NCBI GenBank assembly: GCA_964036045.1
Contig: OZ038379.1
Span: forward strand, 50,282,001-50,346,000
Reading direction: 5' to 3'
DNA length: 64,000 bases
DNA from: Eutreptiella sp. 'Long Island Sound 2002'
Taxonomy: Eukaryota > Protista > Euglenida
Part shown: positions 29,191-60,634 of the stretch, piece after piece
How the letters are laid out: every line of letters begins with the position of its first letter
How positions within the stretch are numbered: position 1 is the first letter of the stretch
Notes under the pieces: model-generated
What the model saw: the letters and a program-made list of their open reading frames with translations, nothing else
The model's database searches: none
Told to the model about the DNA's origin: nothing
Translations under genes and position numbers: made by a program

Positions 29191-29859
29191 AACTAGTGGC
29201 GGCCACCTTGGGTTGATTCGGGCCTGCCCCTCCACCCGGAAGCCGTGCCCGTGACGCACGCCGGACGCGACCAACAACGCCCCCACCGGCGCACGCGTCG
29301 TCCTCGGCCGACGCGTACTCCCGGCAGGAGCCACAAGTGGCCTTCTCCCCATCCCTGGGGTACCCCGCACCGGAGGGGTTTTGGACCCCCCGATGCCCTG
29401 ACGTGGCCTTGCACCAATGAGGAATCCCCCCCCCCCTCCCCCTACGTCCCCGTTCGAGGCCGAGGACACGCAGATGGCCTCATCGCCAGCTGGTGCCCCC
29501 CTTGGCCCAGCACCGGGAGCCTCAAAAGCCCTCCCTCTGGCGCCTTCCTCAGCGGAAGAATCTCCCCCATCGGGGGAAGTGGTGGCTTCCGAAGTGAAAA
29601 CTTTGCCGGCACATTTCGGTGCCCCCCCCCCCCCCCCCTGAAGCTGGCAGACGCCTTCGGACTTGGGCGCACATTTGCCCTCCCAACTCTGGAAGCCGAT
29701 GCCCACCTCCTCGGACGTCTTAAGGGGGAAGGGGGGGGGGGTTCTGAGAGGGACCCATCGCCTGAGCAGGTTGACTCCCCTGATACCCGCTCACCGCTCC
29801 CATCGACGCTCCCCACGAGTGCACCCCGCTCCTTGCAACCCCTAGCCCTGGAGCCCTAG

Positions 29860-29968
29860 GTACTTGTATGAAAAGTAGTATTGTTCATAATTCATTTTTT
29901 ATTTATGAACGGTTCATATATGAACCATGAATTACGAACAGTTATTATGAACGCTTCTTTCTCCACAG
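29860..29968 (+). other. GT-AG intron C1 with GTTCATAA/TTATGAAC inverted motifs
   Basis: AG|GTACTT ... CTTCTTTCTCCACAG|. The donor could alternatively be at 29866. Confidence 0.65.
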
Positions 29969-30698
29969 ATTTTGTTATGTCTTATTGTCCCTCCGTCTTC
30001 ACGGAGCTGAACATGATGCTTGTTCGGCTTAGTGGTGCCACCAGTCTTCGGCGCAACAAGTGTTCCGACCTTTTGGCCCAATGGATGTCATCGTCCCCCC
30101 TCATGCGGGCCCGTTTTACGGAGGCAATGGACCACGCTCCCCTCCCGGCGGTCCACGAAACCAACGTGCACGCCATCTGTACGTATGCGGAGGCCCTCTT
30201 TCCCGCACCCTATCTGATAGGGCTCCTATTGGAGTTGCGTGCACCCCGGTCCGGCGTCCGCGTGTTGTCTGAGTACATCACCCGCCGGGGCGACGCCTAC
30301 ACCGCCCACACCGGGCTGCCCTTTCCACGGCCCATCCCCACACGGGACCAATTTGACGCAACGTGGAAGTCATTGACCGCACCGTTTGTGTTGTCCCCCC
30401 CGGTAGAATGTGCCGACCCCCCATCGTCGCGTCACTGCTGGCTCATGCGGTCGTGGGCACAATACGTGCAATCCCGGCCAGCCCTGTGCCAGTCTATTGA
30501 CTGGACCTGCCCCCTCACCCTTGTGGTGCGGCGTGACGGGTATCCTTGCGCCGGTGGCGGTTGGTCGCAGCTATCGGTGGGGCTATTGAACCATCGGGTA
30601 AGAGTGCGCACACTTGCCTTCCAATGTGTCATCGGCATGGCCCTCACGGGGACAAGGCTATGGTTGCCTTCGGCCAAATTTGGGCTAAGGTGCTACAG

Positions 30699-30844
30699 GT
30701 AGTCTGCATTATCGTGTTCATCACTGGTTCATAATTGACGCGTTCATGATTCGAAAACTGCCGTCATAAAACGCCGTACTGCCGAATTCTGAATTGTGAA
30801 CGTGTTTTATGAACACGACTTATGAACACCTTTTATGAACACAG
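30699..30844 (+). other. GT-AG intron C2 (146 nt) with GTTCAT/ATGAAC motifs
   Basis: CAG|GTAGTC ... TTATGAACACAG|. This phase-0 join gives KVLQ-RL*SIFDRKSYYW..GGDQ, in frame with ORF 30995. Confidence 0.8.
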
Positions 30845-31946
30845 CGCCTGTAGTCAATTTTTGACCGCAAAAGTTATTACTGGTGTGACAGCTGCGTGCC
30901 GGCAACGGTCCTCCTTGGTGGGGACCAGCCGTGGCCCCGGAGGTTGCTGGGCATCACCGTGGCTCCCCAAGTGTAGAGCATTTTCAACGAGGCCGTGCGT
31001 GACAACAAGGCCAAGTGGTGGAATGGCGTCGCTGCACCGAGGACAACGCGGTCGGATGCAAACAATCATTGTCGCTATCTGGTGACCCGCAAAAATTTGG
31101 ATGCGGCAGGATGCACCGGCGAGCCGCTGCTGGTCATAGCCAGAAATTGGGTATTATTGTGCATATTGCACTGTTGCATGGCCTTCGGGAGGCTCTTGGT
31201 GGCCTTCTTGGGGGCCCAGGTGGGAAATCATCCCCATGAGGTTGCAGGGGAGGTACAGAAAATTATGTACTGCAACCGTTGTGGCGTGCGGTTGGGGGTG
31301 CACAACGTACCGGACGGGGAGGAGGCCCACAACCTGTTCTGTGCAAGGGAGCAGATTGCGCCGCTGCTTGCATGCGTCAAGGAGGACCCCACGTGGCAAG
31401 CGGTTGGAGGGCTGCGAACATTGCTACGCACTTTGTACTCGCCGATTCCGGTTGTGGCACGCCCTTCGTGCCGAATCGTTGCTGCTGCGTTTCGGGAACA
31501 CTGCTGCGGCCAGTCGGGTTCACACTATTTGTTGTTGCTCGAAGAGGACTGTGATGCCATGCTCGAGAGTGCGAATGCATGTGGGGTGGGATTGGCTGCT
31601 GCGTCCGGGGACGTTGTGGACAGCACAAATTACACTTTGAAGAAGGGATGTAATGGGCATAGTTCCAGGGGTGCGGGTGTGGGTAAGAATGCAGCGGAAC
31701 GGGAAGCAATGGTCGTCCTGCAGGTTTGAAAATGGTGGTTTCTAACCTTTGACCTGCCAATGTTGCACTACAACACCCCACATACCGCGGCGTGCACCGC
31801 CGTCTCACTTCTAAGCACCACCCCCCAAGCACCGTCCACCCACGCGCCCTTTGCGACCGAGCTTTATTACTCTTCGCCCATCCATGGACGCCGCCGAGCT
31901 GAGGAAGCTACTGGAGGAGAGCCAGAAGGCAACCTTGGCCCTAGTG

Positions 31947-32096
31947 GTATGCTGTCAGTGTGCTGTTGTGCGCGTTCATATTGCGTTGATGATTCGGCGT
32001 TCATAAAACGGAAACTGCCGTCGTAAATGAATTCATTATGAACCGATTTATGAACTGATGAATTATGAATCGCTTGTATGAACGATTTATGAACAG
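31947..32096 (+). other. GT-AG intron C3 (150 nt) with GTTCATAA/TTATGAAC motifs
   Basis: GTG|GTATGC ... TTTATGAACAG|. Confidence 0.7.
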
Positions 32097-33194
32097 CGTC
32101 CCCCATGTCCACATGAGCAGCGACTGGAGGCCATGCTCCAGCTCCAGCTCAGCCTCGAGCTCCACCTCCACCTCCACCTTCACCTCAAGCTCCTCTGCCT
32201 CCTCAAGCCCACGTCCAACCCCATGCCGCTCACCCCGCGTGCCAACCCGCCGCCGACTCCTCGACTGAGGAGTCAACAGACTCCTCGGAGCAAGAGAGGA
32301 AGAGGAGGAAGAAGGAGGAGGAGAAGGAGGAGGAGAAGAGGAAGAAGGAGAAGAGGAAGGAGGAGAAGAGGAGGAAGAAGGAGGCAGCGGGGGGGAGGGG
32401 GGTGCGGGAGGAGGAGGCCGCGACCGACATTGAGGACGTGAAGGCCGAGATCGAGGACATGGCAGTGGAGGGGGACGCAGGGGGGGGGGGGAGGGGGGGG
32501 GGGTTGTGGCCCCATGGTTGAGGGGGGAGGCGGGCCATGCGTGGGGCCTGGGCCACACCAACCAACGCAACGTGTTGACCCTCCCCCGGGCGCAAGGAGG
32601 GCTGAACAGTGGGTAGTCCCCCGATGCCCCGCTTTTTTCGAGCCCCGAGGTGACTTACGTCACCCTGCGCTGGGCATTTCGCCGCCTTGTGCCGCACCGC
32701 ATCCGCAATAAGGGGGGGGCCTGGCGGTACACGGGGAGGGGGGGGGGGGCATAGGCATGGAAGCCCAAGCCGGGAAAGCCTCTGCCCCCCATCCCCGAAC
32801 CAATTGGGGCTGGGGATTTGACGCGGTCCAAAGTTTTTTCGGGGCCGCGTGGGGCCTTGACGCGGGCCTCCCATTGGGAGCTGTTGTTCCTCCACTGGGG
32901 GGAAATGGGGTGGGTGAAGCTGCAGCGCTCCGTGCGCAATTTCGGGTGCATCCCCAAGTGGGAATCAATTTTGGGGGGGGGGGTTATGACCCGTGGCAGG
33001 AGGCGTTGTACGAGGGGGCCGTGGAGGGCCTCACCATCACCCGCCCCATCAAGCCCCTTTGCCGGGCAGCCCGGGCCACCAGCAGCACCACGGGCCTCAC
33101 TGGCGCCCCCCAGGGCACCCCTCCTAGCGCGGCTGCGAATGTGCGGAACGCCTTGGGCGCCATGCAGACCATCGGACGACAGCCGGATTTTGAG

Positions 33195-33323
33195 GTATGT
33201 GCGTTCATAATTCGTTCATAATTCGTTCATTATTCGGCATTCATAATTCTGCGACCCTGCACTGCCCGTTTATGAACCATGAAAGCGTTTTATGAACGCG
33301 TTTTATGAACGGCACTGTCACAG
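33195..33323 (+). other. GT-AG intron C4 (129 nt), hairpin-like
   Basis: GAG|GTATGT, then 3-4 GTTCATAA-like copies, then 3 TTATGAAC copies, then TCACAG|. The splice is frame-preserving (phase 0). Confidence 0.82.
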
Positions 33324-33979
33324 GTCGTGGACGTGGAAGTGAAACCGGCGGACGTCGCGGGGGTTCGCATCCGGTACCGGTTGGGCACCGCCGAGTTCAG
33401 CATCCCCCTGTCCGCCCTGTACTAGCTGTTGCTCCTCAGCCCCCAACGGGGGTGCGCCATCCTCTCCGGGCTGTGGGAGAGGGAGCGCTCCCGCCGCTTA
33501 ACGGACACTTGGGCGGCGAATACGCCCTGCTGGGCGAGGCTGGGGGAGTTGGGGTGGGAGGGGTGTGCTGACGAGGAGATCCTGCTGTCCAGTTGTGGGT
33601 TGAGCCCCCCCACCCCCGGCAGCCCCCGCAGCACCTCCCGAGCAAAGCCCGCCGCCGAGAAACCCAAACGCCCTGCCGTGCCCCCCCCCCCCCAACCCAC
33701 GCAACCCAAAAAGCCCCCCCCCTCTGAAGCGCAAGTCCTTCGAATCGTGCAGCAGCTCATCGTAGGACCAGGCACACCCCCGTGGACATGGGAAGGGGGT
33801 GAAGGGGAAGCAGCCCGAGCAGCAAAAGCGGCGCAAAGAACCCCCCTCTTTGGAGGGGGATGAGTCACCTGACCGACAGGCCCTAGCCCTGAGGTTTAGG
33901 GCGGCATGAACAAGCAAGGACAAGGAAGGACAAGCCAGTATAGGAAAGATTGAAGCTTGAGCGATTTTTGTGTGCCTTT

Positions 33980-34086
33980 GTATTTGTTCATAAAACGTGT
34001 TCATAAAAAGCGATCATAAAACGCTCGGCGCGTTCATGAAACGGGTTTTGAATTACGAACTGAATTATGAACCGAATTATGAACAG
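33980..34086 (+). other. Fifth GTTCATAA/TTATGAAC block (GTATTT...TTATGAACAG), either a 3'-UTR intron or a subterminal array
   Basis: Same architecture as C1-C4, but outside any recognisable coding sequence. Confidence 0.55.
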
Positions 34087-34429
34087 GGGAGGGTGTTTTC
34101 ATAATTTTCAAAAATTGGCACAAATGGCAATTTTTCCAAAAAAAACCCGGCAGACAAAAAAGAACTCACCTCAAGGGGGTTGACCCCACCCCCCAGTTTT
34201 GAACGAAAAAGGCCCATGGGTACCCTAGCAAGAGCAAAATCGGTCCATATTGCATTAAACCATTTATGATGAACAAAACTACCTTTCATACACGTACCAA
34301 GGGAGGATCACGAAAACCCTGCAGGTGGGCTAGGGTCATCCGAGTCAAGGTCCCCCCCCCCCCCCCCCCCGCACCGTTGTCCCCCCCTTCCAAGCCTCTC
34401 GGATGTAAATTGCACCCCCGCCCAAACCT

Positions 34430-57074: not shown

Positions 57075-57850
57075 TTAGGAGCTTCGCCGTCCTTTCAACA
57101 ATCCTGTCAATGTCCCATTCTTCGTCCTCGGCCCAGTGAGAGGACGACAACGCTTTTGAAGGTGCCTCCTCTTAGACGCAATGTCCCAATCTCCGTCCTT
57201 GTTGGAGGACTCGAACCCGAACTTCTCCGCGGGGGGTGGGCTTGGGGGTGCGCAAGGTGGTGGTGCTCGTGGGTGGTGGGTGAGTTTGGGGGGGGGGTTG
57301 ACGGAAGGCACGGAGGCCTTTGTGGGCTGGGGAAGGGGCTTTGGAAGCCGCGCAAGAATGGGGATGGGGTCTCCAGTGACGTTGGGGGGTAGAACCCCAC
57401 TACCCTCTGCCATCAACTCTTGCCTTCCGAAGCCCATCCACCCGTGCCACATTCCCTGCAACCTAGACCCCTTTCTTGCCCTCCCCCACCTCTCCAGCGC
57501 ATCTAGCACCTCAATCACCACCAAGGGAGACACCATCATGCACGCGTAGAGCGTCGGCAAGGACCAGGCGCATGTCGCCGCTAGGCCTCCAGAACCGGAT
57601 CCAGGCACCCCACGGATCCCAGGATTTGGTCTCCACATCCGATACCTACGAAGTGGATGCGGATCTAGAAGTGTTCTACAACTCAATTCTAAAACCGTTT
57701 TAATCATAAAAGCGGCGATGAGGCAACGGCGTTTTTTGGAACGGTTTTACGGTTTATGAGTAGAACGGGTTTAAAACGATCACACGATGCACGTAACAAA
57801 CCTGGATACTTTGGTCCATCCATGTCGCCAATGCCCGCAGTGCCGCACAC
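57075..57850 (-). pseudogene. Spliced ORF downstream of transposase D, similar to the second gene of C
   Basis: EEELCAALRALATWMDQSIQ | intron 57665-57801 | ... WSLPTLYACMMVSPLVVIEVLDALERWGR, then a Pro-rich region. Confidence 0.45.
57665..57801 (-). other. GT-AG intron D3 (137 nt) with GTTCTA/TAGAAC inverted motifs
   Basis: CCAG|GTTTGT ... TAGAACACTTCTAG|. Confidence 0.6.
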
Positions 57851-58049
57851 AACTCCTCCTCGGGGTGGGGGGCTCGGCTACCTTGGGGGGTAGGTGCAAT
57901 GGTAAGGCTAGGGCGGCGGCCTGGCACTCCTTGCCTCCCCGCTTGTGGATCCTCGCCCTACCCCCCCCGAACCCCCTTGCCAAGGCCTTTGCTACATGGA
58001 ACCCCCCAAAACGTAAGATGGCATCGCCGTCGGGTTGCCATGCCCCCCC

Positions 58050-59510
58050 CCCCCCCCCTGCCCCTTCCCCATTTCAACCACCTTCCCCAACCTGGCCGCC
58101 TCCCACACCCGGAAGCACAAAGAAAATTGGCCGCATTAGCCCACCCAACAAAGCATGACCAAAAAATTAGCTGAGCCCCCTTGCTTAGTGTGTAACACGG
58201 ACCACCCGCAGCGGTTGTCCACAGGTAGCTTCTCCACTCGAACCTTGTCCCCCTAGTGCAGCTGGCATGCAAGGGGCTCTGTACAGGCACCCTACAAGTG
58301 CCCCAATGCCATAACACAAAGGAGCATGCAGGGGACCACTCAATGCCCGGGACGCCGAAGCAGGGGGTAAGCGCTATATTGCGCTGCTTGTAGGGAGGGT
58401 GCCCCCTTCATGTACTTGGGCAAGTGGGTGGCATCGCCCTCAACACTGCGCTGCATGTCCAAAATGCGCCACTGTTTGGCCTTGCTATCCCACACACCCT
58501 TGTTGAAGAGGGTTGCCACTTGGGGAGACACGGAGATGCCCATAATGCGACCAAGGACCGGGCTGTCACCACCCACTCTCAATGTGGCAGGTTGGGGCCC
58601 CTCCGAGCCCCATGCAACCGGTTTGTGGTGCATGTTCTGGAGTTCTCCTAATAGTGCGATTCTAAGATAGTTCTAAAACCGCCTCCGATGCAGCTGGTTT
58701 TCAGCATTAGAACTGTTTCAGAACGACTTTTAGAAGGCTTCTGGAACTTTCATTTCCCGTACAAGCTGCAAACCATCGTTGGCAGTCTTTCTTCCAAAGG
58801 GTGCCCACGGACTTCCTTTCCTTGTCGCTACAATTAGCCAAGGCTATTACCCATACCCCCCCCCCCCCCTGGGTGTGCGGGCTACCTGGCCAAAGTAGGC
58901 CGGGTTGGTGGACATCCGTGTCAATGAAGTGCCCGCAACCCGCAACCGGGTGGCTGTCCCCACGCACTATGAAGGTGGAATCACGGCTGCGGTCATTGAC
59001 ACCTTGGAGAGGCTGTGCAGGTACCGGATCCATGACTTAAGCGACCATCTCATACCGGTGGCTCGGGGGAATGCGGAGCACACCGGGGGGTCCAGCTAAA
59101 GTGGGGCGGGCAACTCCTTCTAGAAGGCGTCGAGCGGGTCCCGGGTGCAGAAGGGCCGTGAGTACCACATACTCCACCACACCGTATTGCGGTATCTAAG
59201 GCCCTGCAATGAGAGTTCCAACAGCCGCCGGAATCCCTTACGAAGTGCCCGCATATCCAAGATGAGGCTGACAACGGCTGTGGGGGTAAACAGGTGTTTG
59301 GCATATTAGGCCACAACAGCTTTGCAAGCGTCATCATGGATTTGGGGGCCCAACTCGGCGAGGGCCACCTTGAGTTGATGTTGAGCCAAGGAGGAAGACT
59401 GGAACCATTGCACAAGCAAGTGGCCCACACGGAAAACCCCCAAACTGGTAGCGCCGCTGAGGGTAAGCACTTGCTTACACAACTCATGGATTTTGGACAT
59501 AAACAAAAAC
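58050..59510 (-). pseudogene. RAG1/Transib-like transposase D, paralogue of C, spliced and 3'-deleted
   Basis: Collinear matches to C: LSGATSL; LLVQWFQSS vs LLAQWMSSS; VRGDSHP vs VRRDGYP; PATLRVGGDSPVLGRIMGISVSPQV vs PATVLLGGDQPWPRRLLGITVAPQV; VVPCMLLCVMALG vs VLLCILHCCMAFG; DNRCG vs CNRCG. Confidence 0.8.
58637..58762 (-). other. GT-AG intron D2 with TTCTAA/TTAGAA inverted motifs
   Basis: Donor |GTACGG at 58762. The acceptor is either TAG (intron end 58648) or CAG (58637). It lies within a few codons of C2's position. Confidence 0.6.
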
Positions 59511-59626
59511 CTAGGAGTAAAAAGGCGTTCCAAAACAGCTCTAAACGTGAGTTATTCTGAAATTCCAAATTCTAAAATAGCTGTTTCTTTTAGAATTCCA
59601 ATTAGAACAAAACCACTCGTTCTAAC
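59511..59626 (-). other. GT-AG intron D1 with TTCTAA/TTAGAA inverted motifs
   Basis: Acceptor CCTTTTTACTCCTAG| directly precedes FLFMSK, as C1 precedes DFVMSY. The donor (59626 or 59616) is uncertain. Confidence 0.6.
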
Positions 59627-60634
59627 GGTCCCCGGGGCCAACGAACGGGCGCCAGCGAGCGGACGTCCCGAGCATCATTGACATTGTGACACAGTTCAGC
59701 TTTTTCAAATACCACCATACCACCTTCAATCACATACATCCTGCTTGCTTATGATGCAATGATGTTTGGCAACAACGTGGGCCCAGGCACCACAACATGG
59801 CACCCAAATGCGGGCTTATTGGTCACCATCTAGGTCCCAATCTTCTGATTTCAGCCCTCTAGTAGGCCTTGTGGTCCGCCACAAGGTGTGTGGCCCCTGA
59901 GACATGATGCCATTGGGTCCGAAGGTCTGGGTACGAGAGGGTGGCCGAGGGGACAAAGTGCAAGTTTTTGGCGACGGGAGACAATGCAGTAGGCCCCCTG
60001 GTGAATTGGTGATTGCACGTATTGGCGCTCTCCCAGATGAGGTGGGGCCTGGGATTGCTTGTAGCTAGAATCCGGGGGCTGCATTTGGGCCATGAGGGTG
60101 GCGGTGTTAGTGAGCGGGTAGGCACAATGCAAGAGGTATTAGGCCCCCGCTTGGGTGAGGGGTTAGCGGCTGCTAGCGGCGCGGAGGAGGGTGTTTGTGA
60201 GTTGGACAGTGTTGCGAAGGCACAGTTCTGGGTAGCATGCAGCCCCGTCTCCAGTGGGCAAGGAAGGAAGTGGAAGGGGGTCCAAATACGCAGATGGATT
60301 GCACAGTGGTAGTGGCAATTGGTGAGTGTTTGGAGGATCACTAGGGACAAGTGTGCGTAGGACACCATGGGTAACAAAATCGAGCTTGGCCAAGGATTAG
60401 GCATGGAAAATTTGGATGCAGAGGAGGGGGTTCACGTGGTCCTCTGCCGCAATGTGACAGTCTACCTTGCGGAACTTGGGAATCCGTTTGGCGAGACTCT
60501 GACTTGAGATGGGGATATGGATCATCCCCTTTTTTTGGGGGGGGGGGGTCCAAAGACGGCATGCTTTATGCAGCCGCAGCCGTTAAGGACTGTTTTCTTT
60601 TGTTGTGGTCCGGCCTTAAGGCCAATTTTGTCCC

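Follow-up and report, generated by a model that had tools for sequence, protein, structure and literature searches.

Several DNA transposons of plants and insects carry many copies of a short motif, in both orientations, near their ends, such as the TnpA 12-mers of En/Spm, the AAACGG hexamers of Ac, and the internal sites of Hermes and P, and these subterminal arrays are presumed to load the element protein and to help pair the ends. In euglenids, nonconventional introns have non-GT-AG borders and ends that pair with each other; Euglena introns with terminal pairing require that pairing for splicing, and an origin from miniature transposable elements with inverted repeats (MITEs) has been suggested for the hairpin introns of euglenids (PMC12501133). 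Here we analyze a window of 64,000 nucleotides (the whole stretch, positions 50,282,001 to 50,346,000 of contig OZ038379.1 from Eutreptiella sp. 'Long Island Sound 2002'), which is without long prokaryote-type genes and holds element D, a decayed repeat with three AT-rich blocks that carry the motif TTCTAA and its reverse complement TTAGAA. We compare D with element C of the same window and with relatives from this and other assemblies. In the reading that we prefer, to which we give a probability of about 0.6, D is a dead copy of a transposon subfamily with a RAG1/Transib fold, and the motif is the recognition site of an element protein, with arrays of such sites stored in introns.

Like Transib, ProtoRAG, and RAG1, these elements have, by prediction, the same catalytic core fold and the makings of a cut-and-paste system with terminal inverted repeats, and their bipartite ends, in which the terminal part is conserved and the putative recognition part stands apart from it, recall the heptamer and nonamer of the RAG signal. 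They are unlike Transib and RAG1 in lacking profile-level sequence similarity, in having a CCCTWGGTAC terminus rather than a CAC-type one, in having two genes with several introns and arrays of the putative recognition motif in those introns, and in reaching a very high copy number in a euglenid. They share with En/Spm, Ac, Hermes, and P numerous short copies of a single motif, in either orientation, close to the ends; they differ in having full arrays deep inside as well, each in a putative spliceosomal intron at a fixed codon, and in a motif that is exchanged completely from one sister lineage to the next. The introns resemble the nonconventional and intermediate introns of euglenid genomes in being short and in having halves that pair into a hairpin (PMC12501133, PMC4770533), but their borders are GT-AG and include a polypyrimidine tract, it is the repeated motif copies and not the intron ends that pair, and in one relative a plain 42-nt intron occupies this site. 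A limited literature search, which is not proof of absence, returned no description of RAG1/Transib-like elements in Euglena or of end motifs stored in introns.

Element D is encoded on the minus strand, and its features, in window coordinates and in the direction of its genes, are as follows (E-type refers to a related lineage of the same genome, and L numbers to individual copies or contigs).

57290-59637, minus strand: element D, which belongs to the GTTCTAA subfamily of a RAG1/Transib-like DNA transposon and is decayed, complete at the 5' end and truncated at the 3' end
59511-59637, minus strand: block 1, 5' terminal inverted repeat and subterminal motif array, aligning base for base with the C end at 29854
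58782-59500, minus strand: remnant of transposase exon 1 with the FIVRGD motif (tblastn against intact E-type exons)
58621-58781, plus strand: inverted segment, with intron 1 (58621-58765) and about 13-16 nt of exon 2
58188-58620, minus strand: remnant of transposase exon 2, GGDSP ... LLC, with stops and a deletion junction near 58187
57793-58186, minus strand: remnant of a second-gene exon upstream of intron 3, reading ...AALRALATWMDQSIQVCY, with homology to L061, L062, and L065
57646-57792, minus strand: block 3, which is intron 3, GTGCATCG ... CGTAG, GT...AG, a decayed hairpin array with junctions common to L061:5352-5216
57290-57645, minus strand: last-exon remnant, at the end of which the copy breaks off

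The 5' terminus is fixed at 59637 by eight D-type copies, in which upstream homology is lost exactly there. At the other side, homology to L061, L062, and L065 stops at about 57290-57313, and neither a 3' array nor a 3' terminal repeat is present in D where its homology stops near 57290; both are seen in the D-type copies L061 and L065, with the terminal repeat of the latter at L065:3311. Stop codons interrupt both transposase exons. About 1 kb is gone from D near 58187, where L061, its best relative, holds 1036 additional bases, and the lost stretch includes the D-type counterpart of C's second intron (5972-5856 in L061). Elsewhere in the genome there are about 40 relatives at 65-84% DNA identity to D, and the protein identity of D to element C at 30000-31200 is 37-41%; the second-gene reading ...AALRALATWMDQSIQVCY of D aligns with ...NALGAMQTIGRQPDFE of C. 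D is a dead, truncated copy in which the system is fossil, with the 3' end gone and one intron array flipped, and the FIVRGD motif in its exon 1 carries the candidate first catalytic aspartate.

A sequence-only reading of the window had described three introns in D between 57665 and 59626, all with TTCTAA/TTAGAA, the first two near the positions of the first two introns of C. The three AT-rich blocks are real, with limits that we refine to 59637-59511, 58621-58765, and 57792-57646 (the middle block was first read on the minus strand as 58773-58630), and so is their motif. Half of the 18 copies of TTCTAA/TTAGAA in the window fall within the 416 bases of these blocks (9 copies, against 0.57 expected from dinucleotide shuffles), a count reached by 0/2000 shuffles. 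Four exact copies lie in block 1, four in the block 2 segment, and one in block 3. TTCATAA is absent from D's blocks, and the five blocks of C contain 22 TTCATAA and no TTCTAA.

Block 1, however, is no intron, for it begins at the element terminus, 59637, and no exon lies upstream of it. It is best described as the terminal repeat plus the subterminal array: the decamer CCCCGGGGAC is followed by TTAGAAC, a 10-nt spacer, and GTTCTAA. The block closes in an AG 10 nt upstream of the ATG at 59500, as the corresponding block of C does (AG 29968, ATG 29977, 8 nt), and the start-codon context TTTTGTTTATGTC of D is common to C and L061; the closing AG may be a spliced-leader acceptor. The middle block, in turn, lies exactly at a codon that holds an intron in C, and it is inverted. 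Intron 1 of D reads GTTTGTGG...AAG on the plus strand, antisense to the D gene, and BLAST comparison with L061, L063, L021, and L023 places the segment 58621-58781 in the opposite orientation to its flanks. Flipping this segment recovers the alignment, including the 5' splice region GTTTGT that is common to C and D. The left breakpoint is at most 1-2 nt away from the 5' splice site and the right one is about 17 nt into exon 2, where about 10 nt were lost, and the inversion appears to be private to D. Block 3 corresponds, with an offset of one codon, to the third intron of C (33198-33325) and not to the second, because the exons that follow match: V-S-DVET-K after block 3 of D and VVDVEVK after 33325 of C. 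Homology of position between the two elements is upheld for introns 1 and 3. The further claim that the D blocks are spliced is not, as D is dead, carries an inverted intron, and is not itself spliced in the manner described.

Across relatives, intron 1 sits at the identical codon and in phase 0 in eight lineages, namely C, D, E, F, and four metagenome contigs (L075-L078); in the E-type copy L066 and the F-type copy L068 the codon is that of intron 1 of C. The intron comes after LW-x4-(Q/K/E), and exon 2 always opens x-(L/I)-Q-x-(I/V)-(I/V)-D. In C, E, F, D-type copies, and the four environmental contigs the borders are GT...polypyrimidine-AG and the exon frame is continuous. L082, an E-like relative from another assembly (70% identity), has at the same codon a plain, in-frame 42-nt GT-AG intron without an array (L082:3221-3262), which the gene caller read straight through (protein P0007); the other blocks of L082 keep CCGGAAC arrays. 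Intron and array are thus separable. From the GT-AG borders, the phase-0 continuity in intact copies, and the relatives without the intron or the array, we infer that the intron blocks are spliced as conventional introns. In a further contig, L070, the junction is exactly without intron 1; such contigs may be genomic, so this was not counted as proof of splicing. The same contig of about 1.85 kb was recovered from five sequencing runs (L070-L074), with the motif GTTCTAC/GTAGAAC at L070:1-130 and 1577-1700. It starts inside an array and continues with an open frame that matches the middle of exon 1, which may mean that the array has a new position or that the element is truncated.

The arrays themselves follow one plan. 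Each is about 110-150 bp long and consists of forward motif copies, a GC-richer loop, and reverse copies, in gene orientation in every block, and the blocks of one element are alike in build, with arrays around a loop of AAAAC plus GC-rich sequence. They are found after the 5' terminal repeat, in GT-AG introns of the transposase gene and of the second gene, and about 200 bp inside the 3' end, such that many motif copies in both orientations adjoin both ends of the element. D adds to this a second motif state beside that of C, apparently with the same architecture in both. In all, nine lineages each have a motif of their own, five of them on environmental or public-assembly contigs.

C, this genome: GTTCATAA
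D, this genome: GTTCTAA
F (L068), this genome: GTTCTA(A/G) with TTAGAAC
E (L066, L069), this genome: GTTCCGG(C/T)GAC
L070-L074, public assemblies: GTTCTAC
L075, public assemblies: GTTATAGCG
L076, public assemblies: GTCAAAA
L077, public assemblies: CTTATAA-type and GTCTAA
L078, public assemblies: GTTCAAAG

A tree of exon-2 proteins (19 rows, those of D partial and with X at stops) supports C at 100/100, E at 100/100, D at 99/98, D+F at 83/86, and L075+L077 at 100/99, with the deeper branches unresolved. Where motifs are shared they follow these clades, GTTCTAA being common to D and F and the CTTATA core to L075 and L077. The terminal inverted repeats, of about 40 bp, tell the same story. Each begins with the conserved decamer CCCTWGGTAC (CCCTAGGTAC in C, CCCCGGGGAC in D, CCCTTGGTAC in E), after which a reverse copy of the motif precedes a forward one, and the C, D, and E ends align base for base through the decamer, the reverse motif copy, the spacer, and TTG plus the forward motif copy. 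The differences between the three repeats fall on the motif positions. The decamer is present at element ends only and is absent from the internal arrays; a search for it on the environmental contigs gave no regular match, and L078 has, by eye, a related end that begins CCCTAGAAGC. The motif is private to each lineage, with the terminal repeat and every array changing together. The sequence-only reading had proposed, from D and C, a concerted change of motif at persisting positions; this holds and extends to intron 1 at one codon with different motifs in eight lineages. Its expectation that motifs would track the transposase tree is borne out as well, and the comparison that it suggested between intron motifs and subfamily termini shows terminal repeats that differ between lineages at the motif positions.

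As D is too decayed to model, we turned to P0007, the database open reading frame (ORF) of the E-like relative, which runs through its own 42-nt intron, and D is linked to P0007 by exon homology. An AlphaFold2 model built from an alignment of exon translations and homologues has predicted local distance difference test (pLDDT) values of 83-98 over residues 260-520; an earlier exon-2 model from a 10-sequence alignment was too poor for use (pLDDT 48). In a Foldseek search with the P0007 model, the best 45 Protein Data Bank (PDB) matches were RAG1, BbRAGL, and HzTransib, with a best E value of 4e-6. The VIA-align Z scores were 17.0 for RAG1 (296 residues, 4.6 Å, spanning RAG1 572-978), 14.9 for BbRAGL, and 13.0 for HzTransib, as compared to 8.8 for the P element and 5.7 for Hermes. 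The model thus points to a catalytic core with the RAG1-type fold, an RNase H-like domain with inserted helical domains. The invariant candidate catalytic residues are the D in R-G-D-G of exon 1 and, in exon 2, D27 in GGD and E261 in V-E-S-x-N, and these candidate D/D/E residues may resemble the RAG1 motifs. The predicted fold marks the transposase as RAG1/Transib-like; it does not place the element in Transib proper, since the terminus is not of the CAC type and the target-site duplication is ambiguous.

Under the preferred reading, the motif would be the recognition site of the element's own DNA-binding part, which could be the transposase N-terminus or the product of the second gene, and the conserved terminal decamer would be the cleavage site, a parallel to the heptamer plus nonamer of the RAG recombination signal. 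The intron arrays would be additional binding sites, placed where the coding sequence is undisturbed, and could help to assemble the element ends and to keep co-resident subfamilies from mobilizing each other. A bolder version, which we offer tentatively and with more doubt than belief, is that the intron arrays function as accessory binding sites for a rapidly evolving DNA-binding module, part of the RAG1-like transposase or of a partner protein. Each subfamily would then have a private 'address code', held in its terminal repeats and introns, that blocks cross-mobilizing among thousands of relatives, a diversifying counterpart of the V(D)J pair of nonamer and nonamer-binding domain. The inversions in D and in several C copies (see below) might then be side effects of enzyme action at internal sites. 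We see no rival that would account as simply for the changes in the terminal repeats.

Several observations weigh against this reading. Pfam gave no useful match for ten D-region ORFs, five C and A ORFs, or three intact E exons, and phmmer and a 10-sequence profile run against PDB sequences returned neither RAG1 nor Transib. The heptamer-like CAC start that is typical of Transib is not found at the C, D, or E termini. Splicing is read from DNA borders, frames, and relatives. D is degenerate, and its block 3 keeps one exact TTAGAA only. The candidate 5-bp target-site duplication is ambiguous: the flanks of C, the only copy seen with both ends, are TGGAG and AGGAT, which are equal at 3/5 positions. 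Conservation is mixed. In two D-type block alignments it reaches 82% and 84% in the motif columns and 61% in the others (p = 0.011 and 0.0004), values that may be inflated by the aligner anchoring on repeated words and by kinship of the copies. In the C family, which is young, motif columns are no better conserved than spacer columns, such that constraint is visible in older comparisons only. With the lineage-specific motifs and the changes in the terminal repeats, this conservation (82-84% vs 61%) nonetheless supports the element-specific selection or homogenization that the sequence-only reading had suggested.

Should the preferred reading be correct, these elements would form a RAG1-fold series in which the recognition part of the ends was replaced many times and the cleavage-proximal part was kept, a ready-made system for studying how RAG-like enzymes acquire and change end specificity. 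They would also illustrate how a transposon can house numerous protein-binding sites in its own genes harmlessly, by keeping them in introns. For the debate on the origin of euglenid hairpin introns, the relevant point is that intron and hairpin cargo are separable here.

The explanation that competes best is that the arrays have no function and are kept alike by neutral homogenization, through slippage, gene conversion, or a few master copies, with the motif drifting by lineage. The shared block build, a loop of AAAAC plus GC-rich sequence in every block, is what copying between blocks would give, and the equal conservation of motif and spacer in the C family, as well as the loss of an array from a retained intron in L082, fit equally well. 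What this account handles poorly is that lineages with transposases only 30-45% identical have kept arrays at the same sites, that the motif also switches in the terminal repeat at homologous positions, and that the motif columns of D-type blocks are better conserved than the neighboring columns. We therefore regard neutral homogenization as unlikely, though as the rival to be taken most seriously.

Rather less probable, in our view, is a role at the RNA level, in which the intronic hairpins bring the splice sites together, as structured introns of euglenids do, or yield double-stranded RNA that is processed into small RNAs that regulate or silence the element. The intact introns of C and E do fold far better than shuffled sequences (z of -4.0 and -3.6), and the decayed D blocks modestly better (-2.3 for block 1, -2.2 for block 2 on its ancestral strand, and -1.8 for block 3); moreover, Euglena introns with terminal pairing are known (PMC12501133). 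Yet the borders are ordinary GT...polypyrimidine-AG, and the same site in L082 has a 42-nt version without a hairpin. A hairpin requires complementarity within one intron only, so the use of one motif across introns and termini would be unexplained.

We consider it highly improbable that each block is a miniature derivative of the element, made of two fused ends, that inserted into the element's own genes and was later spliced out. The blocks do look like two facing half-arrays, the hairpin introns of euglenids have been suggested to derive from MITEs (PMC12501133), and the lineage of L070, called G, is without intron 1 and may hold a block elsewhere. The terminal decamer, though, is missing from internal blocks, eight lineages have intron 1 at an identical codon and phase, L082 has the intron but no array in it, and the 5' splice region GTTTGT is common to C and D. 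Three genomic matches to block 1 only proved to be ordinary 5'-terminal fragments, and within the window, where the search for such signs of MITEs or introners was made in place of a genome-wide one, all clusters of the C and D motifs lie inside C and D. Finally, chance or low-complexity AT-rich sequence might be invoked for D blocks that are short and decayed, one with a single exact hexamer, but this is refuted by the 0/2000 shuffles that reach the observed count and by the same motif at the same places in independent D-type copies.

The element used for comparison, C, lies on the plus strand and has the following parts.

29854-34303, plus strand: element C, GTTCATAA subfamily, with terminal repeats at both ends
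up to 29968, plus strand: 5' array
30699-30844, plus strand: first intron
31947-32110, plus strand: second intron
33198-33325, plus strand: third intron
33980-34086, plus strand: 3' array

Its start is shared by 27 C copies, which begin at 29853/4, and the matching inverted end is at 34303. The true first intron is 30699-30844 rather than 30699-30891, as intact copies show exon 2 starting VLQSIID. A first look at the genome gave more than 5000 candidates for the C family. The second gene of C (window 31885-33425) has its ATG at 31885, followed after 21 codons by the second array intron, a long low-complexity part rich in E, K, and R, and, beyond the third array intron, a last exon. Pfam gave no match for the one piece of this gene that was tested (32757-33221), and we regard its product as a candidate motif-binding partner.

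An inverted internal segment of 200-640 bp, like that of D at 58621-58781, is also held by 5/29 C-family copies, at the following positions in C coordinates.

30561-30758: inverted segment of L034
30031-30668: inverted segment of L035
30364-30651: inverted segment of L039
30301-30502: inverted segment of L047
29851-30051: inverted segment of L057

These could reflect recurrent rearrangement, nested insertions, or assembly error.

Other features of the two elements and their surroundings deserve mention. C/G runs of 12-19 nt (window 58037-58063, 58855-58870, and 29621-29640) recur in both elements and in relatives. At L061:4583-4690, the D-type copy's 3' array is adjoined by the end of a C-type element that is oriented the other way, and the C and D subfamilies have inserted beside or into one another there. 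Beside a D-type fragment, L067:4848-5682 contains dense arrays of GTCGACA (8x), AAGTGTC (5x), and AAATTGCGG (about 5x), and other repeat families of the genome may carry private motif arrays of their own. Just outside the 5' end of C (window 29840-29853) there is a CCCTAG-CCCTGGAG stretch, and telomere-like CCCTAA or CCCTAG repeats stand beside the ends of two environmental relatives (L070:1758-1774 and L078:50-75); such repeats may point to a preferred target or be connected with the CCCTAGG terminus.

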